Below, piece after piece: positions 29,882 through 64,000 of a DNA stretch of 64,000 nt; the first letter of the stretch is position 1, and every line of letters begins with the position of its first letter. The notes under the pieces are model-generated. The model ran no database searches. It was not told where the DNA came from and worked only from the letters and a program-made list of their open reading frames with translations. The position numbers were made by a program, and so were the translations under genes. The DNA is taken from NCBI RefSeq assembly GCF_963921235.1, contig NC_086101.1, positions 158,596,001 to 158,660,000 of the forward strand, in the 5' to 3' direction. The DNA comes from Mobula hypostoma. Its lineage: Eukaryota.

Positions 29882-29974
29882 TAATGTGTTAAAACTAAAT
29901 TGTATTAGTTTTTATATGTATGTCAGGGTTAATTCATTAATTTCTGTCAATGTCTTTCTATGTTATTTGAGTAG

Positions 29975-40227: not shown

Positions 40228-41263
40228 CAGGAATGGACTATGCAATCTCTGCATCCTTTCTAAATTGGTGGTATCCATTTGCTCACCTGAAACAACTGTT
40301 TCAAAGACTTGGTTCAATTAACACTAAACAGTATAAAGCATACGTGAAAGGTATTAAGTTTAGTTTCTTTACAGATCTTGTAATTGTTACCTTAAGTGGA
40401 AATATTGATCTTCATTTATGAGAAGGTTTCAAATGAATAACCACATAGTTATATTTTACCTTAAGTAAGATGTAGGAGGAAAAAGCAGTAACCAAACCTA
40501 TTGCTTTTCTATTTGTATATCCAGAGACCTTGCAAATAATTGAGAATATTTTATCACATTTTATTAATGAGGTGGTAATTCATTATCTATTGTGATTCAA
40601 TTTAAAACAGAAGCCATAGCCTTGCCCCAAAAGAACAATGAAGTTCTAGGTGATTGGTCACGAATTTTGTAAAGTTATAACAATGCTGACAGAGTTGTTC
40701 TTACTGCAGGTAGAAAAGAGCTGAGCCGCCTTTATTTGCAGAAATAACTTATACAGTAATTAGTGTTTTTTTTAGCATAATTTCCTATTTTGGGGTATTT
40801 CAACAGGTTTAGAACATTGTTTCACTTTACTTTCCTGCTTTGATTGAAACAAATGGTATTTCATGGCCATGAGAGTGAAGTATTGGGGAAAATTTCCAGA
40901 AGTTGTGTGTAATCCGTGGAGAGAGAAAGGGAGACAGATTTCTGTTATGTGTCCTTATCACCAGTTTGTGAGAATTGTTAGCATTCTTACTTAAATGTGA
41001 TCAAAAATGTTGGCATAAGTATAAACCAGAAATAAGCCTCTTCTACCTCATCCAACATTTTTATTACAATTGATAAGCTTAGAGATTTCCCTGTTTTCCT
41101 TTAAATGACAATGCATTGTAATTGTTTTCAAACTACGATTTGCATTCAATTGTATCCTTTATCCAAATTAGCAAAATCCATTTCAATTCATTAGAAATCC
41201 TCTGTTAGGTAATGTGATGAAGATTACCAATAACACTTTCTGCAGTGTTTATAAATAATGTGC

Positions 41264-41269
41264 AATAAA
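41264..41269 (+). terminator. Candidate PTCD2 polyadenylation signal
   Basis: AATAAA about 1 kb after the stop, followed by a T/GT-rich tract (tttatcttttgtgtccttggtgtc). A second AATAAA lies near 41342. Confidence 0.55.
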
Positions 41270-42214
41270 ATATTGCAATATCCTCTGTATGTGAACTCAT
41301 ACTTTATCTTTTGTGTCCTTGGTGTCATAGCATGGAACTGAAATAAAACAGATCCTGCACATTTTAAAAGGAAACTGAAGTTTGAAATCTATGTGCACAA
41401 AGACTATTCAGACTTTGCTTTCATGTGTAAAAAAAACCTTATTTTTCTGATTCTTTTCAACCAAAACAACAGTTACAATGGTATACAAATAAATTTTCTA
41501 TAATTTGGACAATATGCTGGTATTTTGCTTGTAAGATGCTCTAATCAGAGAGCAGTTTTTTTAAAACTGCTTTTTTTTTTATTTCATTGTCTATCATTGC
41601 ATAGTAACTGGACAATAAATTGTAGAATCAGCCAGCAGTATGTACTGAGACCAGCTAAGATTAGTAGAGGTTAATTCAGACACTGCAGCTAATAATCTCT
41701 ATTATCATCCTTTGTAATGGAGCTCTTTGTCCCTTTTCCAAGTCTCTCGGACGTGTGCCTACCCTGAAGTTTACATCTACTCTTTAACAGGAGTTCAGTG
41801 AGACCCTTTCTCACTGCTACCCCCTCTGTGATCTCTCCTGCCCTCCGACTCTTCAGACTCATCCAGACTCACCAGCTTGTACTCCATTCCCCCCCCCCGA
41901 CCTTTTTGTTCTGGCTTCTTCCCTCTTCCTTTTCGTAGATGCTGCCTGACCTGCTGAGTTCCTCCAACATTTTATGTGTGCATAACTGCTAATCAAAAGC
42001 CATTCTTTGATTCTGGCCTTCATTATTTTCTCAACTGAGATGACACTGCATTCAGTACCCTAAAGGAAAAGGCAGTCAAAAGAGATGTTAAAATTACATT
42101 TGCTGCAAATGGAAATGATTTTGAGCATGATAATCATTCTGAAGAGGTAATGCAACCAATTCAGAGCAAATATCCAAAAGTAATTTTAAAAATGCACCAA
42201 GGCAAAAAGTGAGA

Positions 42215-42415
42215 CAGAAGAGATTCTGCAGATGCTGGAAACCTGGAGCAACACAAAATGCTAGAGAAACTCAGCAGGTCAGGCAGCATCTATGGAGGGA
42301 AATGACCCTCTATGTACATATTGGGCCGAGACCCTTCATCAGGACTGTTGACTGTTATTTCCCTCCATAGATGCTGCATGACCTGCTGGGTTCCTCCAAC
42401 ATTTTTGTGTGTGTT
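42215..42415. mobile_element. Penelope pLTR inverted pair
   Basis: TGCTAGAGAAACTCAGCAGGTCAGGCAGCATCTATGGAGGGAAAT and its reverse complement flank a partial hammerhead (CTGATGAAGGGTCTCGGCCC on minus). Confidence 0.75.
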
Positions 42416-43887
42416 AAGGCAAAGAAGGAATGAGGTGTGGAGGTCAGCTTGTGGGAGTTCTTAAAAGTTCTGGGAAAGAGAATGCAGATACAGAATAAAA
42501 GCAGACCTATTTGGAAATAGAACAGGCAGCATCTCTGAAAGGAGTTAAGCATGTTTTAAGCTGCATTTAAGGTTAGAGCAGGGGGATGGTGAGAACAATT
42601 GTTGAGTGCTGTCAGCATTTTCTGCTTTATTTCAAATTCCCATTTCTACAATTTATAGATTTTTATCTAACAACAATAACTGATTTGATACATCAGCTAT
42701 CATTGTACATGGGACATATACTATTAAAGATATAATTCAACATTCTACAAAGAGCAATCTCTGGAACAGAACTGAAGTTGAAGGCAGCAGGGGCCCTCCT
42801 TTCTGATGTTTAATTTGTCTCTTCTCTTGGTGATAAAGGCAATGAAGATGTCTGGAACTGGCTGAAAGTGTGAATCTCAGTCTGGTGCTTGAGTAGTTAG
42901 TGGAAAAGTTCAACCAGTGTTACAATGACTCTTGAGGACTTCCATTTTGACGAAGTTTTCATTCAGTACAAATCTGATGTACTGGTCAAGTTTGGGGAGT
43001 CCATTAGTTTTTGAAATATTTAATTGGAATGGTTAGCTTCAGAGAATGGCTTGTTAGATCAAAGTTAATTTATTATCAAGTTATGTATAACTTATACAAC
43101 CTTGAGATTCGTCTCCTTACAGGCAGCCACGAAACAAAACTTTGAACTTTGAGATCAATGTAGGTGGCAGTTCTGAATCAGTACTAAAGTCATTTTGGAG
43201 CCAAGTGAAGATAAGTCATAGTCATAGTCATACTTTATTGATCCCGGGGGAATTTGGTTTTCGTTACAGTTTAAGGCTTAAGATAAAAGCAACAGATTTT
43301 GTTCCATAAGAGGGATTAGTGACCCATATTTTCCCCATAGACATACAGTTTAAAAGTAAAAATCTAGATGTACTGAATTTACATTTATACTATCCAGAGG
43401 CTACATTAAGGATTTGGAATTGAATTATTCATCTAATATTGTACCCATATGTATATTAAAGAGGACAGTTGTTTAAAATGGGAGTTAATGTTTTTGTGGA
43501 AGAGGTTAACTGAAGTTAAATAAATTAATGAGTAAAGGAGACCATTTTCCAAGTGGGGAGCTCGAAATACAGTTAGCCTAACATTACTTTCTTCCTTTTT
43601 GATACTGGGAATTCTCGTGCCTGTGTAGTTGGGTGGAATTTATAATGTGTTTACACAAATGCAAGACAGGAACCTCAGGGTGAATATTCCAGGTTCCAAG
43701 CTTGTTTATTGTCATTCTTCAGTACATAAGTATGAAGAAAAACAAAATGATTGTTACCCCAGATCAGATGCAGCATGAATAACACAATAAGCATAAAAAC
43801 AAAAAAATATAAATATAAAAGCAATCTTATAAAATACAATGTACAAGTAACTGTTGAGTGTGGCTGTATACAAGGTTAGTTTATATA

Positions 43888-44416
43888 CATTCAGTGGCCA
43901 CTATTAGGTACACTTATTCACCTTGTTAATGCAAATCAGACAATCATGTGGCAGCAACTTAGTACATAAAAGCATGTAGACATGGTCAAGAGGTTCGGTT
44001 GTCGTTTAGACCAAACATCAGAATACGGAAGAAATATGATCTAAGTGATATTGACCATGGATTGTTGGTGCCAGACAGGGTTGTTTGAGTATCTCAGAAA
44101 CTGCTGCTATTCTGGGATTTTCATGCACAACAGTTTCTAGAATTGACAGAGAACGGTCAAAAAAGAGAGAAAATAAAAAAAAGAGTGGCATCAGTGGGTG
44201 AAATTGCCTTATTAATGAGAGGGGTCAGAGGAAAATGATCAGCCTGGTTTGAGCTGACAGGGAGGCCAGAGTAACTCAAATAACCATGTGTTACAACAAT
44301 GGTGTGTAGAAAAGCATCTCAGTGTTCAACATGTTGAATCTTGAAGTGGATGGACTACAGCAGAAGAAGACCATACCAGGTTCCTATCCTGTACTGAATA
44401 AAGTGACCACTGGGTG
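43888..44416 (+). mobile_element. Tc1-type MITE
   Basis: TA-flanked CATTCAGTGGCCACT...AGTGACCACTGGGTG; same family as 21655 and 62737. Confidence 0.8.
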
Positions 44417-45009
44417 TAGATAGACTAATGGTATGTGTGTAAAGTGACACTAGGTGCCAAGGTTTCAGTTCTTTTAAATCTCTGCATAACCTTGCTGAAA
44501 ATTCCTAATATCTTTGCTAAAATAAAAGTGGAATGCACATTTATGACACTTTTGTAATATTTAATTGCTCTTAAAGTTTGAGGCTGGAATGATGCTCGTG
44601 GCTATTTGGCTCAATAATAGGATATTAAGAAGGAAACATGGAAAATGCTGGGGATACTCAGCCATTGAGGCAAGACTTGAGAAGAAAGAAACATGGTTAT
44701 GTGCCTATCATTTCTCAGCTGTGTTGACTCAACATATGAATGGTATGTCAACTTTGGGAAAGCTGTGGCCCAATACCCAAGGTTCCTCCATGGTCATCTT
44801 TGGGTACCTGATGCCCCACCATCTGAAGAGTCTACCATTATGCTAAGGCAAGTAATGCAGTGGGGAAGTATGTATGTATGTATGTGTGTGTATGTATATA
44901 TATATTTATATATCATGATAAGGTATATTCTGTACATGCCCATTAGCTAAAGCACATAAGGGAAAATACGCTATAGCAGCCAACTCTTGGTTCGATCTGC
45001 CTGTGATAT

Positions 45010-45270
45010 CCAACATCTTGACCTTGAAAGTGCTGTGTCTAGGGGTAGAATTGGGAAAGCGACTTCTACAGGACCTGAATGATAAGGATATGCAAAGCAC
45101 ATCTCTTCTAACCAATCAGATTTGAAAGGTAGCGCAGAGTCTGAGCCGGAATTTCTCTCAGCAAACTCACACCCAGGGATTATTCCGAAATCCACTGGGA
45201 GTACGTCACGAGCCCGCTCCACGTAGTGTGCGTGTGAAGTTCTTTCTGCTCCACACACACATCCGAAGCG
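45010..45270 (+). promoter_or_regulatory. Promoter of the IDH2-like gene
   Basis: TGACCTTGA (ERR element TCAAGGTCA on minus) at 45019-45027; CCAAT at 45112-45116; ACGTCA CRE-like site near 45203; CACGTA (TACGTG on minus) at 45220-45225; local CpG enrichment. Confidence 0.65.
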
Positions 45271-45358
45271 ATGGCCGGGTTGTTAAAGATTGTGCCCTAT
45301 TCGATCAGGAATGGAGCGCGGGTACTCCCGGCCTTCGGCAGCGTCCCGCGAAGAGACT
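45271..45358 (+). CDS. IDH2: IDH2-like NADP-isocitrate dehydrogenase, exon 1 (mitochondrial presequence)
   Basis: MAGLLKIVPYSIRNGARVLPAFGSVPRRD+T, donor T|GTGAGT. Resembles human MAGYLRVV...PRRH-Y with the same split Tyr codon. May be a paralog rather than the ortholog. Confidence 0.88.
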
Positions 45359-46467
45359 GTGAGTGAACTCGATACTTGCTTAACAACAGCTTCTGGAAAA
45401 CCTTAGTTACCCCACACAGGCTTTATCAATTCGGGCCGTGACTGCTGGTGCGTGAAGTTATTGCTGGCGTTGCCTGGGACGCTGGGCAATTCGTTTGTCA
45501 ATAGTTTGAGCTCAGTAAAATCCACGAGGCTCCGTCACCTGCTGTTCTGTTCCTTGTACTGGTTTTTGCAAACTGAAAGGTTCTCGTTTACATTCCTTGT
45601 GAGTTCCTTTGAAGACCAATTCCCACCCTCCCTTTTGCAATGATGCTTTTGACAATTGCGATGATGTCGACAGGTTATTCTACTTTGTCCGTGTGGGTTG
45701 ATTTCCTAAGAATGCATTTCGCCAACATTTTGTTTATTCACGGGAAAAGTCTTTTAAATTGACTTGCTCTGTTGTAGGTATGCAATATGGCTACTGAATG
45801 AAGTGTTCTTAACTGCGTGAGTTCCAGCATCTTGTACTTATTGCTGGTAGGGAAAGCCAGATAGAAAAAGAACTCCCTTATTTCTCAATCAAATGATTCT
45901 TAACCACTTCTTCCTCACATCCGCAGCATTTGTTTTATGATCACTAACAAAAATACTCAAAGACGTATAGGAACTTAATATAAATAATTTTTGAATCCAA
46001 CTGAATTTTCTCTGTGGTCTGGGTTAATCATCAGTTCTGGGAATTCTTGCCCAGTCCTGTAGTTTGGTTGAAGCAGATCAGGAGACACAAGGAAGAGACT
46101 GCAGATGCTGGAATCTGGAGTGGAAAAAACCCCAAACTGCTGGAGGAAGTCGGTGGGTGGACACCATAGTGTAGCAGTTATAGCTCAGGGCACCCTCTGT
46201 AAGGAGTCTGTACTGTATGTCCTCCCCGTGGAATGTGTGGGTTTTCCCTGGGTGCTGTGGTTCCCCCCCACAGTCTAAAGACGTACTGAGTTACGCCAGA
46301 CAAGCAGGATCTCCCAGTGGCCACCTGTTTCAATTCTACTTCCCATTCCCATTCTGACTGTCTGCTGCCGCAATGAGGTCACGTGCAGGGTAGAGGAGCA
46401 ACACCTTGTATTCCATCTGGGTGGCCTCCAACTTGATGGCATGAACATTGATTTCTCAAACTTCCAG

Positions 46468-47323
46468 TGTTACGTACCCCGTAACTGGGTTGCCAAACCA
46501 GCAGAAATGGATCACTCAGTTGGAGTCTGGAGTACTACTAAGAAAGTTTTATTAAAGAAACAAGCAACACCGTAATCGAAAGGATAATAAATGCAACAGT
46601 TCAGTGATGATAAACACACATGTGCACAGAAGTAAGATAACAGCATCAATCAAGCTCTATCGTTGTCTAGGGGTAAATGACCAATTTCAAAATGACTCAA
46701 AGTTCAGTCCAGTTAGTAGTTCAGTTCGCAGTAATCGTTGCCATGGCGATGGACAAGGTGGGGGAAGAGACAGAGAGAACAGGAACAACTGATCATTCAG
46801 ACACGGCTTCACTCACAGACCGGCGAGATGGCTCATAAGCAACTTTTGGGCGGGTCCTTGGTGATGTCACCTGAGGTCACCGACTGTGACCCCTCCTCCA
46901 GATGCGGTCGATCCTCTGCAGTGAACCCGGCACCCAGGCAAGGGCGGACACACACCGGGTTCCCGCTGATCGTACCTTTCCACCCTGGTCATTGTCTGGT
47001 ACTTCTCACCCACTCGTGAGAAGCGTACCGCTTCCAGGGTCTCGTTACCTCGGGTGGCGTGTGTCCTGCCTTAGCGAACCGGTCCCTTTTTATCCCCCCT
47101 GCTGGGGCATCGCCTGTCCATCACTTCAAACAGTTCAGGGTTCAAAGGGGGAGCCGCTCCAGACAGCTCTCTCTCCCCCGTTCCTTCATTACACATCTCC
47201 AGACGCTGCTCCATTGTTCCTTATCTCTCCTTCCCCTGAGGGCAGGTGGCAGACCAACTGCTGATGCCACTGATGCTAGCCCAGGCCAGCAAACATCTTA
47301 ATTTTATGTGTATTCTCGTAACA
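46468..47323 (-). mobile_element. Solo LTR (Gypsy-like)
   Basis: TGTTACG...CGTAACA termini; 4-bp TSD CCAG; AATAAA on minus near 46550. Confidence 0.85.
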
Positions 47324-47481
47324 CCAGTAATTGCCACCCCCTAGGGTACCCTATTCCCGTTTCCCTCACTCACCTTATCTCCCTACCTGACCATCACCTC
47401 CTTCTGGTGCTCCTTCCCCTTCCCCTTCTTCCATGGTCTTCTACCTCTTCCATCAGATTCCTTCTTCTCCAGCCCTTTATC

Positions 47482-48162
47482 TGAATTGAATTGAATTGAA
47501 CTGAAATGAATTGACTTTATTTCTTACATCCTTCACATATGTGAGGAGTAAAAATCTTTACTTTATGTCTCCATCTAAATGTGCAATGTGCAATCATAGT
47601 AATTTATAATAAATAGAACAGTACACTCAAGTCAGGAAGAAGCTGTCCCGGAGCCTGTTGGTCCTGGCTTTTATGCTGCGGTACTGCTTCCCGGATGGTA
47701 GCAGCTGAAATAGATTGTGGTTGGGATGGCTTGGGTCCCCAATGATCCTTTTTACACACCTGTCCCTGTACATATCATGAATCATGGGAAATTCACAACT
47801 ACAGATGTGCTGGGCTGTCCGCACCACTGTCTGCAGAATCCTGTGATAAAGTTCCCTTAATCAGTTCCCTGACTGGGTGATGCACCCAGTCAGGATGCTC
47901 TCAATTGTGTCCCTGTAGAAAGTTCTTCAGACTTGGAGGCCCATACCAAACTTCCTCAACCGTCTGAGGTGAAAGGCACTGTTGTGCCTTTTTCACCACA
48001 CAGCCGGTGTGTACAGACCACGTGAGGTCCTCAGTGATGTGGATGCCAAGGAACTTGAAGCTGCTTGCCCTCTCAAGCCCAGATGCATTGATGTCAATAG
48101 GGGTTAGTCTGTCACCATTCCTCCTGTAATCCACAACCAGCTTCTTTGTTTTTGCGACATTG
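47482..48162 (-). mobile_element. Rex/Babar-type LINE, 3' fragment
   Basis: KTKKLVVDYRR...SFKFLGIHITEDLTWS; HNLFQLLPSGKQYRSIKARTNRLRDSFF; (ATTCA)n tail. Confidence 0.88.
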
Positions 48163-49079
48163 TCACCAATCAACTTCCCAGCTCTTTACTTCACCCCTGC
48201 TCTCTCCCAGTTTCACCTATCACCTACCACCTTGTACTTCCTCCTCTCCTCCCCCCACTTTCTTAGTCTGACTTCTCATCTTTCTCTCCAGACCTAATGA
48301 AGGACCTCAGCCTGAAATATCAACTGTACTCTTTTCCATAGATGCTGGCTGGCCTGCTGTGTTCCTCCAGAAATTTGTGTGTGTTGCATGGATTTCCAGC
48401 ATCTGCAGATTTTCTTGTGTTTGAGATTAACTGATTATCGTACACGGTCCCGTGATTAAGTTAGGATTAAATTGGGGTTGTTGGGGTTGCTGGGGTGGCA
48501 CTGCTCAAAGGCCAAACCCGCGCTATATCGCTAAGTAAGTAAATAAATAAACCTGCTCCATTCCTGAGTTCCTCCAACAGTTTGTTCTTTTGTGTAAGCC
48601 TGGTCCCTATTCAACAGGATCATAGGCTGCTGTTCTACTTCAACACTATCTAAAGCCTTGTCCTTTGAATCGCTAATATCCATGAATCTATGGATCTCAG
48701 TTTTGAATCCATATTGGTGCTAATGAGGAACACTATCTCCTATATCCCTTTCCCCTCTCCTCACAGAAGCTTCTGGATGATGTCTACCTGACCAGCGTTT
48801 TTAGAAAATGTACGTCTCTGCCTGTATGCCCAATAATGTTGCATTAGGCTTAATTACAAGTACGCCATCTGCAATTAGTATCTTTACAGACTTGGTTGCA
48901 CAGTTCATGTACTATATGAATTCTCATAAAATGGGGCATCTTCTAACTACTGCCACGTATAATCATTAGGAATCTAAAAATTTAAATAAAATTACAGGAA
49001 CTGCACAGTCTCTTTGGGGTAAAGAGTGATTAATCTACATCTTGTTGGTAAATGTATGTTTAATTAATTTATGAGTCAG

Positions 49080-49465
49080 AGTATAACAGTACAGAAACAG
49101 GTCCTTGGGCCCATCTAGTCCATGCTGGTTTGGTTTTCTGCCTAATTCAGGGGTTCCTGAATTTTTATGCTATGGACCCTTGTCATTAGCTAAGGGGTCT
49201 GTGGGCCGCAAGTTGGGAACCCTGGCTCAGACAGTCCCATGTAGCTGCACTTGGACTGTAGTCCTCATCCAGACTTGGACCCACATCCACCACTTCCGCT
49301 GGCAGCTCGTTCCACACTTGCACCACCTTCACATAAAGAAGATCCCCCTACAGTTCCTCTGAAATATTTCACCTTTATTCTCAAATTATGACCTCCAGTT
49401 CTAGTCTCACAAAATCTGAATGGAAAAATCCTGCAAGGATTCACCTTGTGTATAACCCTCATGAC
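49080..49465 (-). mobile_element. CR1 3' fragment containing a small hAT-like MITE (~49148-49225)
   Basis: ETRTGGHNLRIK motif; inner CAGGGGTTCC...GGGAACCCTG. Confidence 0.6.
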
Positions 49466-50002
49466 TGAAAGAAATATTTAATCACAGATGGGATAAAAAC
49501 CATGCTTGCTGGCAGAAGCCAGCCAGTCACTCAGTCACATTAAGTTTTAGGGCAGATACTAAAATAGCTAGGTCTACGCTAGATAAAATGAATCATTGAC
49601 AGAAAACCAGCCAGGCGTGTGAACTTGATGGGCCAAAGGAATGACTTAAGAAATCATCAACTTCCTCTTTTGTGATGCATGTTGATATTTTCGTGGATCA
49701 CTCTGCAACTTTCAGTTGTCTGCAGCAAAGTAAAATGTGCACACAGTATATCATTGTACCTCATCTATCTGTGCCCTGGATTTATTGCATCCCATTTGAC
49801 TCTGTAGCTTGTCCCTAGGTGCTAAATTAATAATTTGCTTGGAACTGTGATGTTAAATCTGATTCTGTGTCCATCATTATCAAAAATGAATTTGGAGCTT
49901 TCGAGGATTGCCAGACCTTATCTGGCTCTGTTGAATATCTGTGGTGGCCACATTGAATTACAATGAGTGTTTGACACTCAGTCTGTGGTTTACATTTCAA
50001 CA

Positions 50003-50610
50003 TGCACAAAATGCTGGAGGAACTCAGCACATCAGGCAGCAGCTACGGAAATGAATAGATGTTGATGTTTCGGGCCAAGACCCTCTTTCAGGACTGGGGG
50101 GGGGAGGGAATGATGGCAGACTGAAAAGGTGGAGGGAGAGGAAGGAGGCTAGCTGGAAGGTGATAGGTGAAGCCAGGTGGGTGGGAAAGCCAAAGAGCCG
50201 GAGAGGAAGGAATCTGATAGAGAAGAGTGGGCCATAGGAGAAAGGGAAGGAGAAGGGGACCCAAGGCAAGCAATCAGATGGTGAGAAGAGATGAAAGGTC
50301 AGAGTGGGGAAGAGAGGAAAGAGGGTGGGAAATTTGTTTACGGGGAGGAGAAAACAATATTCCGTCCCATCAGGTATGAGGCTACTGAGACAATATACGA
50401 GGCGTTGCTCCTCCACCCTGAGAGCGACCTCATCGTGGCACAAGAGGAGGCCATGGACTGACATGTTGGAATGGGAATTGGAATTAAAATGTTTGGCCAC
50501 CGGGATGTCCCACTTTTAGCCGATGGTGCGGAGCTGCTCAACGAAGCAGTCCCCCAATGTGTGACGGATCTCAGCAATGTAGAGGAGGCTGCATCATGAG
50601 CACCAGCCCA
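50003..50610 (-). mobile_element. Penelope 3' fragment (GIY-YIG end + pLTR)
   Basis: AKHFNSNSHSNMSVHGLLLCHDE..RVEEQRLVYCL; degenerate hammerhead near 50060-50095. Confidence 0.85.
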
Positions 50611-53140
50611 CAATGGCCCTGTCTAGTTTATTTAATTTGCTATAGAAATGCAGTAAAGATGAGACATTAAAGTGATAGTGAAGTGTAGACAAAGGTAGAT
50701 CAAACAAAGTTTCCACAGAAGATGTTTGCTGTAGTACTTAGAATAATATTGTTTGAAGTAAATTTATTATCAATGTGCATGCAGTCCTGTGCAAAAGGTC
50801 TTTGGCACATGTATAGAGCTAGGGTGCCGATGACTTTTACACAGTACTGTAGCAATTTTATGTATTGCACCGTATTGCTGCAAAAAAAAACCAAATTTCA
50901 TGACGTGTGAGTGATGATAAGCCTGATTCTGATATGGAGACTCTATCGTGGACTGAAAGTGGGAACGGGGCAGGGAGAGGGGACATGGTTGGGAAAAGAG
51001 GAAAGGAGAGGGGAATGAGCAGGAATCACCGGAGAGACATTCTGTAATGATCAATCAGCTAATTGTTTTGGATCAAATGACCTTGCCTGGTCTTTCAGGG
51101 CTGGGTTGCGCTGTACCCACACCAACCCCCTATCCCGGCTGTCCTCTTCTGCTGCCTGTCTCGTACCCCTCCCACAGCGCTCCACCCTCACCTTTCCCCA
51201 TATCCATTGCTTCCGCCAGACTTACAAACTCTGTTCCACGTTGTTAAGTACAGTACTGTGCAAAAGTCTTAAGCACCCTAGCTATACAGGTATATATGTC
51301 ACCATAAGCTACCCTGAGATTCATTTTCTTGCAGGTATTCACAGTAGATACCCACCTTATTGGATATGGTAAGCAAAATGGATGGTTTTGATACTAAGGT
51401 GGGAAACCATACTATGTTCCTGGGAGGTGCCACAATCTGAGATTAAAAAAGACCTCAGCTGCACAAACACAGATCTGCCGAAACATGGTGGCAAAACATA
51501 CATTAGTTTATTGAAAAACAGAAAATTCTGGAGATCAGACAACATGTAGAGGGGGGAGTTAGTGTTTAGGTGAAAACATGTAATCTGAATTCCAGTTGGA
51601 ATTCCATTCTTCATATTTTAGTCCACTAAAAAACTACAGAAATATTCGAAAGAGTAAGAGATTCTGAAAATCCACAACAACACAGAAAATGCTTGGAGAA
51701 ACTCAGCAGGGCAAGCATTGTCTATCGAGGGGAATAACAATCGACGTTTCGGGCTGAGCCCCTTCCAATCTGAAATGTCAACTGTTTATTCCCCTCCACA
51801 GTTGCTGCTTGACCTGCTGAGGTCCTCCAGCTTTTTGTGTGTTCCCACAGAAATATATCATGTACTTTAATAATAAATATACTTTGACCTTTGAAATTCT
51901 CTCAGCTTTGAGTATGGTTGGTTGTTATTTTTGATTTGGTGCAAAAAAATTATTGGAAGCATGCTGAGTTTTAAAAAAAAACAAATTGGTAAAATGCAGG
52001 GTCACAACAAATGCCTCCCCGCCCCCCCCCCCCCCACACACACACACAGATGTTACTTGATTTATTGAGCTCCTCCAGTCAGTTTGGGTTTGGTAAATTG
52101 CACCTGAAAATTCTCAGGGAAGTGAAGGATGAGCAACAACTTTATAGTATTGATGTCATCCAAGGAATAAATGCAAAATATTCTTCAAGTGAGAACTATA
52201 ATAAATGTACAATGCTGGAAATACTTACCACAGATCCTGCTTCTTCTGTTAAGCAAAAAAGAGTTAACACTTTAGATGAGTTATAATTAGAATGCTCTCC
52301 AGTGAAAATGCTTTCCTGGGATATTAATTGATCAGTTATGTATTTTCAGTGTTATTTTGTTAGTATATAGGCAACCTATTTTGTTGGTGTTTTGTAGATG
52401 AAGTCTTTTTCAGCAGAAAATGCAAACATTGATATGAATGTTCTATGAGGTGAAAATGCTCGATTCGGCATAAATTTGCCAGTCACCGTTAATTTATCAG
52501 AATGCTCAGAATGTCTGTTGGTGCAGATTAAGTCTGATCGGAGGGTGGATGACGGAGAACAACAGTTTGCTTGAGAATTTGGGTGAGGCTTTGCTGGTGG
52601 TGAACAAACCGACCAGGTTATCCTGTATTAGATAATGATATCAATATTCAAACAAGCCTCAAGCAATTGTATAAGATTATTTGAACAAGAGAGTTATAGA
52701 GACAGGAAAAGATAACTGACTTTTTTATCACAAAAAAATTACAAACATACATTTTTCAACCTTTTTTTCAATATGCTACTTGTATTGTTAGAAATTTAAA
52801 GCAATTTTAAAATGGTACAGAGGCGCTGCTGGATGACTTTGGAGTTTCAATGAGGAAATTTGAGGATACTATATTGCCAGAACGCGACATAATTGTTATG
52901 AGGGAAGTTCAACTGGAATGTCGGTTCGGTAGGAGATGACGTTTCATTGCATTGTATATTACTGACATGCTTTCAGAAGTGTGATTAATAAAATGGATCT
53001 GGAGGTGGGCAGTTTAAGGGTCTTTTCTCCCCCCCCCCCCAGTGATTGTGGGAGACTGGAACATGATGCTTTCGGTTTTCTGATGTGCAGCTGAAATGTT
53101 GTAACCTATAGAGTGCAAACTGGGATTAAGGTGCATATTA

Positions 53141-53280
53141 CATCAAAGTTGCTGGTGAACGCAGCAGGCCAAGCAGCATCTATAGGAAGAGGCACAGTCG
53201 ACGTTTCAGGCCGAGACCCTTCGTCAGGACTAACTGAAGGAAGAGTGAGTAAGGGATTTGAAAGCTGGAGGGGGAGGGGG
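53141..53280 (-). mobile_element. Penelope pLTR fragment
   Basis: Same subfamily as 36121-36292 (AAAGTTGCTGGTGAACGCAGCAGGCC). Confidence 0.8.
53195..53232 (-). ncRNA. Minimal type I hammerhead ribozyme motif (Penelope-associated)
   Basis: Minus strand: AGUC-CUGACGA-AGG(GUCUCGG)CCU-GAAA-CGUC^GACU. Complete core, stems I and II, palindromic ACGU helix III. Confidence 0.8.
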
Positions 53281-54390
53281 ATATTGTTCTTTTGTAACCA
53301 ATAGTGGACTGAGGGACATTCAGTTCTGCCCTGTCTGAACTGTAGTGTTTGCTGCACAATAATGGCAACTTTGTTGTACTATACACTTCAATAATTTTTA
53401 ATTAGATATGCGGTAGAATTTAAATACAAAGTTACAATATTTACTTTTAAAGGTAAATAATGTGGCAAAAATTCCCATGGAACAGTGGCTCCCTACTTGA
53501 TAGGAAATTCTGTGAGCTTTTAAAATATAAATGAAGTCACTGAGACTGCTTGAATTTCTTTTAAGGAATGAATGGTCCATGATGTCAGATGGTGAATGTG
53601 TGGTAGAGTGGGGCTGGGAGTGTTTGAGTGCTTTACTGAGTGTGAACAAGTGGAGCTTCCATTCAAATCCACTGCTGTGGTTCACAACATTTATCAGTGT
53701 TCTAGGTTACAGGTGACAGTTTTCTCTCTATTCTCTGCACCAGCAACAGAAGATATGAAATACCAACCAGCAATTTGCATCACAGTGACCTTATTGCATA
53801 TTTTTACTTAAAGCTGAGGATGACTAAACTGCCTGTCGTGACCTAGTCAGGATGGTTATCAGAAAGTGGCCACTTAAGCAGCCTGAGAATCACAAGCACT
53901 GTTGGCCAGTAAGAGTATACCGAGAGCACTCTTGCGAATACATACTCATGGAAGCATGTGCTTTCTGCGCGCGGAATCCACGAACATTTAGACAGAAGAT
54001 CATATCATACCCATCACCTTGGACATAGTACATCATTTGGGTTTGTTGCATGTATCTATTTCCAGGAGCTCTGGATATTTTTCCTGTCACTTCACTCGCC
54101 TATTCACACTTAAATGTTCTGTTTTATTGGCTTTTTTTACTCAATTTCTTGTGCTTCCCCACCACCACCATTCCTTCTTCCTCTGTTTTATTTCTGTGTC
54201 CCAGCAGAAAATGATGAATCTTCATCTTACCGTGATGGTAATCTGTAATTACCACCATCCAGTTTGTTTCTGCTGTGGAGCAGGGATTGTAGGCTCACAA
54301 TTTTGTCCACAGCCACAAGGGCCACTTGTATTCATGTGGCATTAGACAGGTGTTTGCATAAGAGATAAATAATGTACTGTTGCCACACGT

Positions 54391-54691
54391 CAAAGTTCCC
54401 TCCAAGTTTTGCTACTAGCGCACAAAGGAATTTAAACTGGGCATAAACGGTTGTCACCCTCTACCTCGTTGACATGTTAAACATCGTACACAATCACATC
54501 TGGTTTCTGATGTGGGCAGTGTTGACAACGTGGAGTTTGCAATGATTTGTCTGCAGAGATTAGAAGTGACACTTGTACTGTTTTTATTGAAGAAATTATT
54601 CAATGCGCACATGTTGCCGTCACTGGACAAAAAAACTGCACGGCACAAGATTGTTGCGTGCACTGGTCATTACAAATAAGAGGGAACATTG
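54391..54691 (+). mobile_element. hAT (Tip100-like) MITE related to 35954-37480
   Basis: CAAAGTTCCCTC...GAGGGAACATTG; TSD CCACACGT/CCACATGT. Confidence 0.8.
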
Positions 54692-55711
54692 CCACATGTC
54701 ACCTCTATTTAGAAAAATAATGAAATTTTACAAATGCCTTTAATTTTTTTTAATGAAGCTAAACCACAGTTTTAGGATGCTGACAATGTGTTAAGATACT
54801 TCAGTTCATCCCATAGGTGAGAGTTCAAGTGGATGGCAATCCATTCTGTTGCATTGTGATTGGTGGTTCAGGACTAGGTGGTGGAAGAGGGCAGTTACCT
54901 TCTGCATCCAATACCTGAGCCACAGGTATAACACATGGTTTGTGAAATGCCATAAGTCACACCCATTGTTCAATAAGTGAAACATCGAACTCTGTAATGT
55001 TTCTTGTGCTCAGTGGCTACAGAGTAAAAATACATTGGAGGCTTGAATTCTGAATTGATTAATTAAAAAAATGCAGAAATCAAATGGCAACAAAGGCAGG
55101 AAAATGCGCAGTTTAGGCTTGTTTTGTGCAAGTGTAATGCAGGACTAACAACACAGAGGCCATCCTATCAAGGCTATTTCTTACCCTGGCAAGGAGTCAT
55201 CAAAATCAAACATTATTAACACAAGGGCTTTGAGCAATGGACTAAGTACAAGTTCACTCCCCAGCATGGTACTAACAACATGTTTATTATTAACACCATG
55301 CTGGAGGGTTGGGTGGACCGAACTGAGGAGAGGCCTTAACAAGTCTGTTATAAATGCAGAGACTTTATATTTTGTAAAATGGAATACAATGAGGGAAGAT
55401 ATTAATTTGCTTTGTGTTTTGAAATGGTGACAAACAGGTAAATACTGTTAACTGAGGAATCTTTGTGTGACATTTCATGGAATACACAGAGGTAATAAGT
55501 AGAAGACAGATACATGTTGCCTTTCTATTTCAAGGGGTTTAAAGCAGAAGAGTTAGGAGGTCACTATTACGTTCTCTTTACTGAGATTTCTTTCCCCCAC
55601 CCCACCACCACCACCACCCTTCCCTCAAAGTGTTATGTGCAGTTACCCATGTAGAAATAGACTTTACAGAACAATGAGTAAGTAGGATTCCTGGGCTAGC
55701 CAATGTTGAGA

Positions 55712-58355
55712 TTGTGGATTGGGACAGGCTGTGTTTTTCTTTTGGTGAAGATGAACTTGGTAAGTGGGAGACCTTCAATAGTGAAATATTGAGAGTACAA
55801 AGCTTGTATGTGTCTGTCAGAATAATAAGTAAAGATAACAGGTGTAGGAAATCTTTGTTTTCAAGAGATGTTGTGACTCTGGTTAAGAGAAAAAAGGAGG
55901 TGCATTGCAGGTAGAATATAGGCAGGTAGGAACAAATGAGATGCTTATGGAGTATGCAAGAGAACACTTAAACAAGAATTCAGGGGAGCTAAAACAAGGC
56001 TTGAGGATGCCTTAGGAGAGAAAGTGAAGGAGAATCCTAAGGGATTCTACAGATAGGTTAAGAGCAAAAGGATTGCAAGGGACAAAATTGGTCCTCTGGA
56101 AGATCAGAATGTTAATCCATGTGTGGAGCCGAAAGTGATGGGCGGGATCTTAAGTGAATGTTTTGTTCCTGTATTTACTCAGGAGACTGACACAGTGTCT
56201 GTAGAAATGAGGCAAAGTGGCTTCAACTTAAGGCACCCTATACATGTTACAGAGGAGGAGGTGTTTGCTGTCCTGAGGCAAATTAGGGTGGATAAAGCTG
56301 CAAAACTTGGCAAGGTGTTTCCTCGGACCCTGCAGGAGGCAAGTGCAGAAGTTGCTGAAGTCCTAGCAGAGATATTTAAATCATCCTTCGTGATAGGTGA
56401 GGTACCAGAGGATTAGAGAATAGCCAAAAGTGTATGAAAAGCTCTAAAATAAACTTAGAAATTATAGGCCAGTGAGCCTGACATCAGTAGTGCAAAAGTT
56501 ATTGCGAGGTTTTCTAAGGGACCCCATATATAAGTGTTTGAATAGATAAGGACTGATTAACTGACTTAGGATAGTCAGCATGGCTTTGTGCATGGTAGGT
56601 CTTGTCTAACCAATCTTATACCTATGTTTTTGAAGGAGGTTATCAGGAAAGTGGATGAAGGCAAGGCAGAGGATGTTGTCTACATGGACTTAAGGAAAAC
56701 ATTTGACAAGATCCTGCATAGGAGGTTGGTCAAACAGGTTCAGACACTCAGCATTCAAGATGAGATAGTAAACTGAATTAGACATTAGATTGTGGGAGAA
56801 GCCAGAGAGTGTTAGTAGATGGTTGCCTCTCGGACTGGAGGCCTGTGACTAGTGGTGTGCCACAAGGATCGGTGCTGGGTGTGTTTTGTTTGTCATCTAC
56901 AGACATCCCACCCTGCAAAAACTCATTTCAGGGAGGTAGCACCATCAATTTGCGGGAGACTTCCGGGAGAGGTGGGATCTCTGCAATAGAGTAGCTCCTT
57001 AGCAGCTAGCCAGCTAGTTTAAATAACGTTAGCTATGCTAATGAACGAATGACACCTGTTAAACTCACCTCAACATGTCTTTTACAGTCTTAACCCACCA
57101 TGGGCAATAGAAAGTCATTGTTGCAAACAGTGCAGCGAGCAGCACTGTCATTATTTTTGACCCCTATTAGGCAGGGGTACACTTTAGTGTAGCCTGGGGT
57201 GACGTACGTTTTATATATTTTTTTGGAACACTCTGCAATGGTGCGCTCTCTCTCTCTCTCTCTCTCGTGGTCGCTCGCGCGCTCTCAAGCGCTCTTGCTT
57301 GCTTTCTCTCTCGCTCTCTCTCCTCTAGCTTGCTTTTGTTCTCGCTCACTCTCTCGCTTGCTTTCTCTCTCATGCGCGCACACTCTCTCGTGGTCGCTCT
57401 CATGCTCTCTCTTGCTTTTCTCTCGCTCGCTCTCAAAGAAATTGATTTCCGTGATATTGTATATAATTTGCGGGCATCAGGGAGCCACTATTAATATGCG
57501 GGAGACTCCCGGAAGTTCTGGGAGAGGTGGGGTGTCTGCATCTATATCAACGATGAGGATGATAATGTGGTTAACTGGTTCAGCAAATTTTGCAGATGGT
57601 ACAAGATTTGGGCTGTAGTGGCACTGAGGAGTGTGGTAGAATAAAGTGATCTCAGAATTTTGGTCCATAACTCATTGAAAGTGGCATCACAGGTAGATAG
57701 GGTCACAAAGAAAGCTTTTGGCACATCGGCCTTCATAAATCAAAGTACTGAGTACAGGAGGTGGGATGTTATGTTGAAGTTGTATGTAAGACATTGGTGA
57801 AGCCTAATTTGGAGTATTGTGTGCAGTTTTGGTCACCTAATTAAAGGAAAGATGAAAATTAGGTTGAAAGAATACAGAGAAAATTTACAAGGATGTTGCT
57901 GGGTCTGGAAGACCTGAGTTATAAGGAAAGATTGAGTAGATTAGAACTTTATTCTTTTGAACGTAGAAGATTGAGAGAAGATTTGATAGAGTTATACAAA
58001 ATTATGAGGAGTATAGATACAGTAACTTCAAGCACATTTTTTCCACTGAGGTTGGATTGGACTGCAACTAGATGTCTTGGTTTAAGGGTGAAAGGTGAAA
58101 AGTTTAAGGGGAACATGAGGGGAAAACTTCTTCACTCAGAAGGTCGTGAGTATGTTGAACGAGCTGCCAGCGCAACTGGTGCACGTGAGCTCAAGTTCAA
58201 TGTTTAAGAGAATTTTGGATAGATACGTTTTTTGGTAGGAGTATGGAGGGTTGTGGCCCTGGTGGTGGATTAGAGTAGGCAGTTTAAATGGTTCAGCACA
58301 GACTAGATAGGCTGAAGGACCTGTTTCTGTGCTGTACTTTTCTCTGACTATGACT
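55712..58355 (+). mobile_element. CR1 LINE ORF2 remnant (close to the 15-19 kb subfamily)
   Basis: DWDRL, GRSCLTNL, YMDLRKTFDK, SGVPQGSVLG and the CR1 3' end; split by the MITE at 56900-57538. Confidence 0.9.
56900..57538. mobile_element. Non-autonomous DNA transposon with 6-bp TSD (hAT6-like MITE), copy 2
   Basis: CAGACATCCCACC...GGTGGGGTGTCTG; TSD CATCTA; excision restores the CR1 codons for FVIYIND. Confidence 0.9.
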
Positions 58356-58364
58356 CATTGCTAT

Positions 58365-58646
58365 GATCAGGAAGGAGGTATAGGAGTCTGAAGACACACA
58401 CTCAACGATTCAGGAACAACTTCTTCCCCTCTAGCATCCGTATTATAAATGGACTTTGAACTCCTGAACAGGACATCACTAATTTTTAATGTTTATTTTT
58501 GCACTACTTATTTAATGTGACTATTTAATATATATGCACTTACTGTAATTCATGTTTTTCTATTATAATGTATTACATTGTACTGCTGCCACAAAGATAA
58601 CAAATTTCATGACATATGCTGGTGATACTAAACCTGATTCTGATTC
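58365..58646 (+). mobile_element. Rex-type LINE 3' end
   Basis: SGRRYRSLKTHTQRFRNNFFP followed by the AAACCTGATTCTGATTC tail. Confidence 0.75.
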
Positions 58647-59165
58647 ATTTTCTGCTCAAGTCTCAGGACTGCAAATGATACCACTGTGTCTGTTGTAAGC
58701 AGCTTAATATTTTGTATTCCTAAGAGCTTCCAGCTGGAATGCATATCATTGGTACAGAGGATCTGAGAAAAAAATTGGAACCTACGAAACCCACACAGGT
58801 TTTAAACTAAATACCTCATAGAACCTTTGTAAATAACTTAGAGTCACTTGTGTCATAAATCATTGACTTGGCTTGTAAAGTGAATTTCTTAACCTTGTTT
58901 AACCTGACTGGATATGGTAGTTTCTCTTAAAATGCTAGCCTTAGATTGAAAATCTGCACCAAGATAAAACTAAAATTCAGAACACTCAGAAATGCAGCAC
59001 TTTCAAATGAATTCACTAACATTTATGCAAATATCTTTCCACCACATTTGACTTTCTACAAAAGCCCTACCCAGTCTGCATTTTTGCCCAGACTGGAGTT
59101 CACATTCTTTTGACTTTTTTTACACCTTTGTCAATAAATGGATTTTTTTGTTTGTTTTTTTGCAG

Positions 59166-59257
59166 ATGCTAAGACACGGGTCAAAGTAGAAAATCCTGTT
59201 GTAGAAATGGATGGAGATGAAATGACCAGAGTGATTTGGAGTTTCATTAAAGAAAAG
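59166..59257 (+). CDS. IDH2: IDH2-like NADP-isocitrate dehydrogenase, exon 2; gene continues right of the window
   Basis: ttgcag|..|gtaaca, 92 nt. (Y)[30 protein letters not shown] versus human [31 protein letters not shown]. Confidence 0.95.
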
Positions 59258-59624
59258 GTAACAGATGCTGGATTAAACCAAGTGTCCTTTGTAATCAGGG
59301 TCATTTTCTTTTATAATTGGCTTCAATTTATTCTTCAATGATCATTTAATATTTTTTCATCTAAATTGTGAATGATAATAGAAAATATATTGGACTTCTA
59401 AAATAAAAAAGGTTCTGCCCTTTTTCAATATCAGATCATTTCTTTCTTGTAGGAAGCAGCAGCATTGTCACAGATTAGCCCATACAATCAATTGTTGTCC
59501 AGTTAATTTTACATTGTGTAATTATCCTACATAGGCCAAAGATTATGAATATTTTGTTGATTTGATTTGAGAATCACTTTTGGAAAAAAATTAGAAGTTA
59601 ATAGTGTTTTTTTAACTTCTAGAT

Positions 59625-61610
59625 GAGGGGTCCCCAAACTTCTTTGCACTGCGGACCGGTTTAATATTGACAATATTCTTGCGGTCCGGCCGACCCGGTG
59701 GGGGCGGGGGTGGGGGGGAGGGTTAATCTCACAACCAGAATATAGGTGATAGGTCAACTATAAGTCATTTATCAGTGGCTAATACACTCAATTTTGTTTC
59801 TAAAAGGGTTTATCTAACGAATTTAATATTAACCACACAGTGCATATTTTCCTCACATGAATATAGTGATAAGTCAATTATAAGTCATAAGGGGGTTCCT
59901 TCCGTCCAGTCTATTCCATAACTTAGTTTTCATTGCATTCATTGCTGAAAACTCCGCTTTGCAGAGATATGATGTTGGAAATGAAAGCTACGTTTTCAGT
60001 GCTTTCATGGCTATCTCAGGATATTCAGCCTTGACTTTGATCCAGAATGCCAGCAGAGATGTTATGTCAAACATACTTTTCAGCCCACCGTCAAGCTCGA
60101 GGAGAGTTGATCTTCTTCCCGCGCAGACATGGATGATTCACCGGGGACATTCACAGATGGGTCACGGATCCATTCCTTTGCACGTCTTGGGTCATTTGCG
60201 GTTGGGAAGTAACGCTCGAATTCTGTCGACAGCGAAGACAGGTGATCGCACACCAGCTGTGAGCCTCAGTCTCTCCCAAATTCCCTGCTAATGTTGGGAA
60301 CGTGTCAAATATGCCCCTGTCCACTCGCAGTCCCCACAGTTCCAGTTTGGCTGTGAAAGCAGACACTTTATCCGCCAACTTGAAGACAGTTGTTATTCTC
60401 CCCTGAAGTGACAAATTGAGTTCATTGAGCAGGTTGAAGATGTCACACAGATAAGCGAGTTTTGCTATCCACTCCTCGTCACTGAAGTGTGCTGTCAGGG
60501 GTGTGACTTTTTTCTTGAAAGAAATCTCTGTAGCTGCTCTCTTATCTCAAAAACCCTGGCCAGGGCTCTCTCCCTTGATAGTCACCTGACTTCAGTGTGT
60601 AAGAGAAGGCGTTTGTGCTCTGCATTCATTTCCTCGCAAAGCTGCTCAAACAGACGTGAGTTATGGGCTTTTGCTCTGATGTGATTCATAACTTCAACAA
60701 AGTCACTCAATACAATGTTAAGATCAGGTGACATTTTTCAGCTAGCCAGCATTTCCCTGTGTGTGACACAGTGTGTAGACTGGCATTCAGGAGCAACCTC
60801 TTTGACTCGGGTAGTGAAACCAGACTCGTTAAGCTGTTCCAACAGCTGTGCTTCGATGTCCTCCGCTATGTCATCGATTCTCCTTGAAACTATGGTAGCT
60901 GAAAGAGAAACCTGTGCCATCTTGTTAGCTGCAGCTTCTCCTAACTGTTCATGGCACATGTCCTTGGCAGCAGGCAGAATCAATTCTTCAGCAACAGTGA
61001 AAGGCTCCTTAGCCTTAGCAATACGGCTAGCCACTACGTACGACGCTCTCAGAGCAGCAGCGTTTGTGGAAGTGGTGGCTCTCAGCACTTGCTTCTGTCC
61101 CGCTTGCTCACGTTTTTTTCTGCTCAAAAAACTCAACGGGTTTGTCTTTCAGTGCTGGTTGCTTGTACTCAAGGTGCCGAAGCAGTTTTAAGGGCTTCAT
61201 TGCCTCATTAGACAGCTTGTCTCCACATATCACACACAGGGGGCTTGGAGTGTGCAAGTCACCGATCGCAATAAAGCCGTATTTTATGTACGACTCGTCG
61301 TATTTTTTGTTGAAGGAAGCTTTCTTTTTTTTTGCAGTATCGGCCTCAGCTGTCTCTGTGTGATCATCGTTAGGCCTTTTATGTCCCATACCACCTCTTC
61401 TAAAGAAACTCTCAAGCAACGTTTGTTTTTTACTCATCGAGTAGTTGTAGGTTAACGACCGACTGATGACCTCGTGTGCGTTCAAGTTCAGTAGTGGGCG
61501 TGACAGGGAATGAGGAAAGGTGCAGCTGACTCGTATCGTTTCCTTGCGGCCCGGTAGCACATGCTTTGCAGCCCGGTACCGGTCCGCGGCCTGGTGGTTG
61601 GGGACCACTG
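59625..61610 (-). mobile_element. hAT Charlie/Buster-type transposon (MER1/Charlie3/OC1-like ends), disrupted transposase
   Basis: TSD TTCTAGAT/TTCTAGAC (NTCTAGAN); TIR CAGTGGTCCCCAAC; KYDESYIKYGF..PLCVICG..LSNEAMKP, AKAKEPFTVAEELILPAA, HCVTHREMLAS. Confidence 0.92.
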
Positions 61611-62736
61611 TTCTAGACCATACAGGTATTTTGAATAATTTCATAATGCCTATCATGATGTAAGAGTTTACCAATGACCTGAAGCCTCTACTTTGTTAAA
61701 CATTTCATTATTTCAAACATCCACGTTAAATTCTCATTTGCTTTGTTTTGCAAGCCATTATGCATGTCGTCATTCTCGAGTTTTCTTCTTGGAATCAGTT
61801 TCCATCTTAGCTGGTGCCTTGAAAGTTGATCAAATTTTCAAATGCTAACCTAGAGTCAAGTCATTGATGTAGGGTAGGAGAATGGTGTTTAGGAGTTTCA
61901 GAACCGGCGTCTGGTGCACTCTGTACCACCTCCATTTTACATTCTAATCTGATACTGTTTCTGCAATGTGTTCATTGCTTCCTAACCTCCAATTAATTTC
62001 CTATTTGTTCCTATCCTGAACTTTGAATCCCCATCACCTTGAACTTGTAGTTTTTCATATAGCATTTCAATAAATTAGTTTTTAGCTGTAGAGCAACCAC
62101 GTTCCCTGCAGACGATACAGTCTTTAACAAAGACAGTAAAGTCAACAAGGTTGTTCCCTTCTGTACCCTAAGTAAAATGTTTTAAATGCACAGTAGATCA
62201 AGCAGCAAATGTGAATGAAAAGACTGATTTATGTTTCTGATGCCTATATCAATGAAGTTGATGATTAGGTCTAGAAAATGTGTGGTACTAATTTATGTTT
62301 ACAGACTGACCAGTACATTTTCAGTTTGTTTTGCCGCCTTTTGAATCCTCATTAGCTGTTTTTTTTTCTTCCTTGATTATTACATCATCAAAGTGATAAA
62401 GTCTTCACACAGGAACACGAGAAATGGAGCAGAAATAGGCTGCCTGGCCTGCCATTCAGTATGGTCACAAATAGTCTCTCCCAAGCCTCAACTCCTCCTC
62501 TGCCAGTTTCTCACAGACCTCTATTCCAAAATCTTTCAAAATACCTTCAATTCTTCTAATGATATGGCATCTAAAATCCTCTGGGGTAGAGAATTTCAGA
62601 TAAACACTCTTCTTTGCTAAAACAAATCTCTAAATACCTTAACTTTAAATTATCGGCTCTTTATAACTATATCACTTTGTTTGAGATGCTCCCTTAATGA
62701 AAGCATCTCAACATCTGCACACCAAATCCCTTCATA

Positions 62737-63269
62737 CACTTAGCACCTACTTTATTCGGTACAGGAGTGGAACCTGGTGTGGTCTTCTGCTGTTGTAGCC
62801 CATTCACTTCAAGGTTGGACATGTTATGCATTCAGAGTTGCTCTGAACACCACTGTTGTAATGCATGATTATTTGAGTTACTTTCACCTTCCTGTCAGCT
62901 TGAACCAGTCTGACCATTCTCCTCTGACCTCTTTCATTAACAGGATGTTTTTGCCCACAGAACTGTTGTTCACTGGATGTTTTTTTTTGTTTTTCACACC
63001 ATCCTCTCTAAGCTCTAGAGACTGTTGTGTGTGAAAATCCCAGGTTATCAGCAGTATCTGAAGATACTCAAACCACCCTATCTGGCACCAACAATTATTC
63101 CATGGTCAAGCCATTTAGATCACATTTCTGAACAGAAATGTGAACAACAACTGAACCTCTTGAACATGTCTGTGTGTTTTTATGCATTGTGTTGCTGCCA
63201 CATGATTGGCTGATTATATATTTGCATTGATATGCAGGCATACCTAATAAAGTGGTCACTTTCTGAATG
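62737..63269 (-). mobile_element. Tc1-type MITE inserted in a degraded minus-strand CR1 3' end (~62405-63600)
   Basis: Reverse complement of the 43888-44416 family. Confidence 0.75.
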
Positions 63270-64000
63270 TTTCTTTTAAACTCCAAGGAATAACTACCCA
63301 AACTGTGTAGTCTTTCTTGATAGGACAACCTTCTCATCTCAGGAATTAGCCTGGTGAAGCTCCCTCCTACTGTCCCCAGTGCTACTGTTTACTTTTTTCG
63401 TGTGAGGGCTGAAGCTGTGTCCAGCGCTAAAGGTGTAGGCTCACCAATACCCTGCACAATTCCAACAATATCCCATACTTATAAACTCCAAACCCTCTGT
63501 AATAAACACCAATATGTTGTTTGCCCTCTTCACTTCACTACTTGTTGGAGCTGCCTGTTAACTTTATGTAAATTAAGTGTATGGAAATGTACTTTACTTG
63601 CAGTAACAAATTAGCATTTTTGTCTGTAACAAAATGTAACCTGCATTTTACCGGAGTGCTTTGCTAATAGTGTTCATTCAACATTATGCTGACGGATCTT
63701 GAATATACCTGTATGACAAACAGTTGGTGTGTTGAATGCCAAGTGTACTAATTAAGCAGACAAACAGAATGCATCCTGTCCTTGAACTGGCGCAGGCAGA
63801 TTATAGTTGGGTATAAAAGAGTGATTATGCTGTCTGTTTTCGAAGTTATCACTGGCTCTTGTGTGGTGATGGTCTTCCCTTGCAGCAAGTAAAATAAATG
63901 TGCTTATGATTGATCCACTGAGTTAACTGATATTTTTTTATAAGACGTAGTGAAAAGGTGCTCCGCAGAATTTGGAGCACCAAAGATCGCATGGTTAGGA

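Follow-up and report, generated by a model that had tools for sequence, protein, structure and literature searches.

We report that a 64,000-nucleotide stretch of the Mobula hypostoma genome (NCBI RefSeq assembly GCF_963921235.1, contig NC_086101.1, positions 158,596,001 to 158,660,000 of the forward strand; hereafter the window) contains the promoter and the first two of the 11 exons of an expressed gene for a second mitochondrial NADP-dependent isocitrate dehydrogenase (IDH), here called IDH2L. On the basis of its genomic position, and not of the protein tree, IDH2L is probably an ohnolog of IDH2, i.e. a copy that dates back to the 2R genome duplication on the gnathostome stem. A PTCD2-like gene ends 5 kb upstream of IDH2L, which is annotated in sharks and rays, and the same genome carries a canonical IDH2 on another chromosome.

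Gene structure and expression of IDH2L

The IDH2L start codon is located at position 45271 of the window on the plus strand and the coding part of exon 1 (45271-45358), which encodes the putative mitochondrial presequence, comprises 29 codons and one additional base, directly followed by the donor sequence GTGAGT. Exon 2, where the mature enzyme begins, covers 59166-59257 (92 nt) with the acceptor ttgcAG in front of it and GTAACA after it; its size is common to all mapped idh2 and idh2-like loci. The two exons are separated by a repeat-filled GT...AG intron of 13,807 nt (45359-59165), and the splice from 45358 to 59166 is used in assembled RNA contigs from four RNA runs of M. hypostoma. In these four runs, all with full-length IDH2L transcripts, the contigs (1758-1790 nt) begin at 45134-45196, match the window until 45358 and go on with ATGCTAAGACACGGGTCAAAGTAGAAAATC, the 30 bases with which exon 2 opens. 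The transcript starts hence lie 75-137 nt ahead of the ATG, which gives exon 1 with its 5' untranslated region an extension of 45134-45358, and to that extent the promoter was checked. RNA contig depth was zero from 44800 to approximately 45134, within the intergenic spacer and promoter region (40228-45133).

The 60 N-terminal residues encoded in the window are identical to those of the two M. hypostoma RefSeq products XP_062905287.1 (P0298) and XP_062905288.1 (P0387), both labelled "isocitrate dehydrogenase [NADP], mitochondrial-like", and the Mobula birostris protein likewise opens with exactly these 60 residues. In the assembly GCA_963921235.1 the gene has 11 exons and, counted from its ATG, a length of 70,348 bp. 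Since exact spliced mapping of the standard form (P0387; a precursor of 442 residues) on the window ends after exon 2, exons 3-11 are located beyond position 64000, and the window includes the first 4.7 kb of intron 2 (59258-64000). When the 30 residues of exon 2 were searched in a representative library, the matches were short mis-called genomic fragments, none of them full-length; two further searches, with one such fragment (P0099) and then a mixed alignment (A1), led to the full-length IDH2L proteins.

A preliminary description of the window, made from its letters alone, had reported two intact exons with canonical splice sites, and the peptide it gave is confirmed by the sequence, the RNA contigs and the identity to the RefSeq products. 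It had also placed the gene 5 kb downstream of PTCD2, in agreement with the 5,044 bp between the stop codon of the PTCD2-like gene and the IDH2L ATG, and had ascribed to it the exon phases of IDH2 and a shorter presequence, both of which hold (see below). Its remark that pipelines may already name the gene IDH2-like is correct as well: RefSeq uses the name "mitochondrial-like" in many genomes. IDH2L is thus already auto-annotated, and this label masks a separate orthology group; in our searches of the literature, no publication on a cartilaginous-fish paralog of IDH2 came up.

Two peculiarities of the gene models were noted. At the junction of exons 4 and 5 (outside the window), isoform X1 of M. 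hypostoma (P0298) is longer by ten residues, KTSVSSLILL, which immediately precede the catalytic tyrosine and probably stem from use of an alternative acceptor or from an error of annotation. In the sawfish (Pristis) X1 model exon 1 is extended upstream by 45 in-frame codons (MPTLGKLW...; 10001-10223 of the sawfish locus L002), and a comparable stretch that reads like a peptide (...STLGKLWPNTQGSSMV...) is found at 44565-44843 of the window, upstream of the transcript start. The stretch common to the two species may be a shared repeat rather than coding sequence.

Family membership and predicted function

With the full-length IDH2L protein, human IDH2 structures reach 807 bits compared with 650 bits for IDH1, while exon 2 alone gives 40-43 bits against solved mitochondrial IDH2 chains and approximately 25 bits against cytosolic IDH1. 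The standard form reaches 737.8 bits on TIGR00127, the equivalog model for eukaryotic NADP-IDH (cut-off 397), and PF00180 is recorded for all cluster members. IDH1, the cytosolic/peroxisomal NADP-IDH, has the fold family (PF00180, TIGR00127) and the chemistry in common with IDH2L, but it scores approximately 160 bits below IDH2, matches exon 2 of the window weakly, and alignments of its chains begin no earlier than residue 23-40 of IDH2L, leaving the presequence with no counterpart in IDH1. Judged by these scores and by the tree described below, IDH2L belongs to the vertebrate IDH2 branch and not to IDH1.

The exon mapping covered the IDH2L loci L001, L002 and L003, which were compared with a cichlid (L005) and a bamboo shark (L004) locus. 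For sawfish, skate and sevengill shark IDH2L it gave intact coding exons of x, 92, 166, 161, 144, 137, 152, 113, 98, 93 and 82 nt, where x stands for the first exon, and the exon sizes of the canonical cichlid idh2 are identical. All ten intron positions of canonical idh2 are kept, and IDH2L is therefore a duplicate made at the DNA level instead of a retroposed copy. The window's own exons, with a phase-1 end of exon 1 and an exon 2 of 92 nt, fit this idh2 exon plan, and none of the downstream exons in the three mapped species is disrupted.

Alignment of four IDH2L sequences revealed that R140, R149, R172, Y179, K251, D291, D314 and D318, the catalytic and substrate-binding residues of IDH2 (numbering as read on the 452-residue deer IDH2 sequence), are conserved. 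The IDH2L proteins of sharks and rays are 89-93% identical among themselves, which indicates purifying selection. Identity to the canonical IDH2 of the same ray is 78.5%, and over the whole protein it is 77-78% to deer and ray canonical IDH2. Approximately 20 positions, many of them C-terminal, are fixed in IDH2L against the state common to the other gnathostome IDH2 proteins. Among its 30 N-terminal residues, K6, R13, R17, R27 and R28 are basic and no acidic residue is present before D29; with this composition, the N-terminus is probably a cleavable matrix-targeting signal.

With an intact reading frame, transcripts and retained catalytic residues, IDH2L appears from its sequence to be a functional gene. 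The mature protein would form the usual dimer and yield 2-oxoglutarate, CO2 and NADPH in mitochondria, and the clade-fixed substitutions suggest altered regulation or partnering with the chemistry left unchanged. IDH2L is likely an ordinary mitochondrial NADPH-producing NADP-IDH, perhaps with changed regulation or partnering; it might differ from IDH2 in how it is regulated, or it might form mixed dimers with IDH2.

Compared with vertebrate IDH2 (e.g. human 5I96 and pig 1LWD), to which it has its best PDB and family scores, IDH2L shares the 11-exon plan and the catalytic residues, and it has a putative N-terminal presequence. It differs in being encoded at a separate locus beside PTCD2, in having a presequence that is 7-9 residues and a C-terminus that is one residue shorter, in the approximately 20 clade-fixed substitutions, which are concentrated near the C-terminus, and in being found only in elasmobranchs.

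Position, phylogeny and origin of IDH2L

The canonical IDH2 of M. hypostoma is a separate protein of 449 amino acids (XP_062921956.1; P0391), which clusters at ≥90% identity with sequences from Pristiophorus, Chiloscyllium and Callorhinchus and with a frog IDH2. In GCA_963921235.1 its gene is on a chromosome of 98,202,791 bp, whereas IDH2L is on one of 199,023,498 bp, and therefore IDH2L is not a translocated single copy. The canonical IDH2 of Mobula, like that of Chiloscyllium, has no neighbours within 10 kb. This agrees with the claim in the preliminary description that the gene is a second mitochondrial IDH2-type gene. We found no evidence in favour of the view that IDH2L is the sole IDH2, relocated, or a decaying or unexpressed copy. 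The canonical gene in the same assembly, the 11 intact exons in three species, the full-length transcripts in four RNA runs and the identity among the shark and ray copies all speak against this view, and we consider it ruled out for practical purposes.

At least 15 elasmobranch species have an annotated IDH2L, among them the rays Mobula (two species), Hemitrygon, Pristis, Narcine and Amblyraja and the sharks Stegostoma, Hemiscyllium, Rhincodon, Scyliorhinus (two species), Mustelus, Carcharodon, Cetorhinus and Heptranchias. The IDH2L of Heptranchias, which is the slowest-evolving, was used as query against 5.8 billion protein clusters. Only two IDH2L clusters were retrieved (92% and 88% identity), both elasmobranch, and the next matches were canonical IDH2 at ≤83%. 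No IDH2L was found in this search outside the elasmobranchs, i.e. in chimaeras (including Callorhinchus), cyclostomes (including hagfish) or bony vertebrates; the absence from mammals that had been proposed for the gene is thus seen here, and it extends to every other non-elasmobranch covered by the search.

Teleosts also have genes auto-labelled "IDH2, mitochondrial-like", which like IDH2L represent a second IDH2-type gene per genome. Unlike IDH2L, these nest in the teleost IDH2 clade (96/87* and 100/98*) and are therefore fish-specific duplicates; the tree rules them out as IDH2L orthologs. In many teleost "IDH2-like isoform X2" models (P0415, P0416, P0419-P0422, P0425-P0428 and P0438; 516-705 residues) the IDH domain is preceded by an EMP24/GP25L domain (PF01105). 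Such models, which recur across species, have the appearance of read-through with a TMED-type neighbour.

The gene upstream of IDH2L extends over 1470-40227 on the plus strand (putative start at 1470, stop codon at 40225-40227), as deduced from exon-like open reading frames (ORFs) and the NCBI model. Its RefSeq product of 381 amino acids has PPR_2 and MRP-S27-family matches, i.e. it is a PPR protein of the mS27-PTCD2 family; when Pfam was run on single exons of the window, one weak PPR_2 match appeared at 29971-30078. The last coding exon (39937-40227, 5' limit approximate) ends in RRTFKPLRSALLSE followed by the stop codon, and tblastn with this exon matched the sawfish locus at 4611-4865 with 80% identity. 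The sawfish IDH2L accordingly has the same upstream neighbour, the last two exons of which are 80% identical to those in the window. A search of the ESM Atlas with the last exon returned chance bacterial matches only. Because the window exons of this gene gave no match to solved mS27 chains, it would be PTCD2, the other member of the family, and we refer to it as PTCD2-like, a name inferred from domain matches, length and position and not taken from a database label. The distance of 5,044 bp between its end and the IDH2L ATG is the same in the window and in the M. hypostoma assembly.

In bony vertebrates the surroundings of IDH2 are different. In the crow, a SEMA4-type gene is head-to-head with IDH2 and a gene for a C2H2 protein of 718 residues is tail-to-tail with it, 1.6 kb away; the same multi-finger gene is tail-to-tail with the cichlid idh2 at a distance of 2 kb. 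The C2H2 genes of the two species are colinear over 487 residues and are of the 11-finger ZNF710 type, with ten fingers found by a scan. Bony vertebrates therefore have the pair of IDH2 and a ZNF710-type gene from their common ancestor. The human order of genes at 5q13.2 is MAP1B-MRPS27-PTCD2-ZNF366, in which ZNF366 has its 3' part (exons 2-5) turned towards PTCD2 (PMC10293283), and ZNF710 is the only close relative of ZNF366 (PMC1693901). Since human ZNF366 is found downstream of PTCD2 and ZNF710 is found beside IDH2, IDH2L occupies the very slot that is predicted by duplication of a PTCD2-IDH2-ZNF block.

Adjacency of PTCD2 and IDH2 as an ancestral arrangement was rejected for amphioxus, where IDH2 (L006, 1-41058; L007, 1-37585) is head-to-head with NNT and tail-to-tail with fibrillin. 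The human relatives of NNT and fibrillin are on chromosomes 5 and 15. The amphioxus flanks thus fit a common ancestral linkage group, although PTCD2 is not adjacent there. Amphioxus NNT (1073 amino acids, with transhydrogenase domains) and IDH2 are two mitochondrial NADPH-producing enzymes that are direct neighbours in this genome.

In the best protein tree (46 sequences, LG+C20), the IDH2L sequences form a clade with 100/100 support, the stem of which is long (0.37 substitutions per site). The clade is inside gnathostome IDH2, after hagfish (97/87*), and outside the chondrichthyan canonical clade (100/99), and it is nominally the sister of bony-vertebrate IDH2 (94/85), where the joining branch of 0.025 is unstarred. 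The tree gives no date for the duplication because the enzyme is too conserved. Of the interpretation of the gene as a 2R ohnolog that the preliminary description had put forward, the second, intact and expressed gene beside a PTCD2-like gene stands. The best tree is compatible with a duplication before cartilaginous and bony vertebrates split, but the alternatives are not rejected either, with p values in the approximately unbiased (AU) test of 0.15-0.37. Likewise, its expectation of a position as on human 5q13 was borne out on the upstream side only, i.e. by the PTCD2-like gene within 5 kb in Mobula and Pristis.

Judged by position and not by the tree, the best-supported reading of the origin of IDH2L is a 2R ohnolog that stayed in its ancestral place next to PTCD2 and disappeared from bony vertebrates and, it seems, from chimaeras. 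We also regard it as fairly probable that the complete sequence of events was as follows: a PTCD2-IDH2-ZNF366/710 block was duplicated in 2R, IDH2L was retained in sharks and rays only, for more than 400 million years, with independent losses in bony vertebrates and chimaeras, and after a burst on its stem it became specialised as a second mitochondrial NADPH-producing IDH.

Several observations weigh against an origin in 2R. With respect to the neighbourhood, the PTCD2 name depends on the domain matches, length and position described above, and the adjacency was seen in only two batoids (Mobula and Pristis); in skate, sevengill shark and white shark the neighbour of IDH2L is more than 10 kb away. 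ZNF366, which the preliminary description had predicted downstream on the minus strand, was not seen within the reach of 10 kb: no gene was called there in Mobula, Amblyraja, Pristis, Heptranchias or Carcharodon, and the three downstream flanks that were scanned (L001, L002 and L003) have no C2H2 motif. With respect to the tree, grouping IDH2L with the chondrichthyan canonical genes costs 6.7 log-likelihood units (AU test, p 0.35), grouping it with the elasmobranch canonical genes only costs 17.1 units (p 0.15), and uniting all canonical IDH2 genes with IDH2L outside costs 2.0 units (p 0.37). The sites with shared derived states number 1-3 per alternative, which is too few for dating. Moreover, the absence of IDH2L from Callorhinchus, hagfish and bony vertebrates also fits a duplication in elasmobranchs only.

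Part of these data would be accommodated by a lineage-specific origin, in which a segmental copy of canonical IDH2 came to lie beside PTCD2 by chance, on the chondrichthyan or the elasmobranch stem, and then diverged rapidly. The restriction of IDH2L to elasmobranchs is in keeping with this scenario, neither of the corresponding groupings is rejected by the AU tests, and a stem of 0.37 needs acceleration under any scenario. However, the best tree puts IDH2L outside the well-supported chondrichthyan canonical clade, its union with the elasmobranch canonical genes is costly (17 log-likelihood units), and a random insertion would have had to hit the one slot beside PTCD2 where human has ZNF366, the sole close paralog of ZNF710. 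We therefore consider a lineage-specific copy unlikely, although it deserves to be kept in mind.

Hidden paralogy would lead to yet another interpretation, according to which bony-vertebrate IDH2 has its true ortholog in IDH2L, and it is the "canonical" gene of chondrichthyans that represents the other ohnolog. The nominal union of IDH2L with bony-vertebrate IDH2 in the best tree points in this direction, as do two or three sites with shared derived states, but the branch that joins them is the unstarred one and the alternative costs a mere 2 log-likelihood units (p 0.37). In addition, bony-vertebrate IDH2 is situated beside SEMA4-type and ZNF710-type genes while IDH2L is beside PTCD2, and it is the canonical chondrichthyan IDH2 that clusters at ≥90% with a frog IDH2. 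Hidden paralogy is accordingly very improbable, and we favour the reading of IDH2L as a 2R ohnolog of IDH2.

Mobile elements in the window and significance

The introns of the two genes in the window include mobile elements. Intron 2 of IDH2L harbours the remnant of a DNA transposon of approximately 2 kb (59618-61617), which is bounded by terminal inverted repeats of 20 nt and whose ORFs, on the minus strand, are broken and lack a Pfam match; it has no part in IDH2L function. On the minus strand at 15814-18151, an intron of the PTCD2-like gene contains a long interspersed element (LINE) retrotransposon, the ORFs of which encode an endonuclease (PF03372) and a reverse transcriptase (PF00078).

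IDH2 is heavily studied as a metabolic and cancer gene and is treated as single-copy in vertebrates, save for the fish-specific duplicates. Our finding is modest in that IDH2L has already been auto-annotated and its chemistry is almost certainly ordinary. Nevertheless, a conserved and expressed second mitochondrial NADP-IDH across sharks and rays would offer a natural enzyme variant for comparison, with approximately 20 substitutions at sites where the canonical IDH2 sequences agree. Finally, if the origin favoured here is true, IDH2L represents one more ohnolog that cartilaginous fishes kept and bony vertebrates lost.

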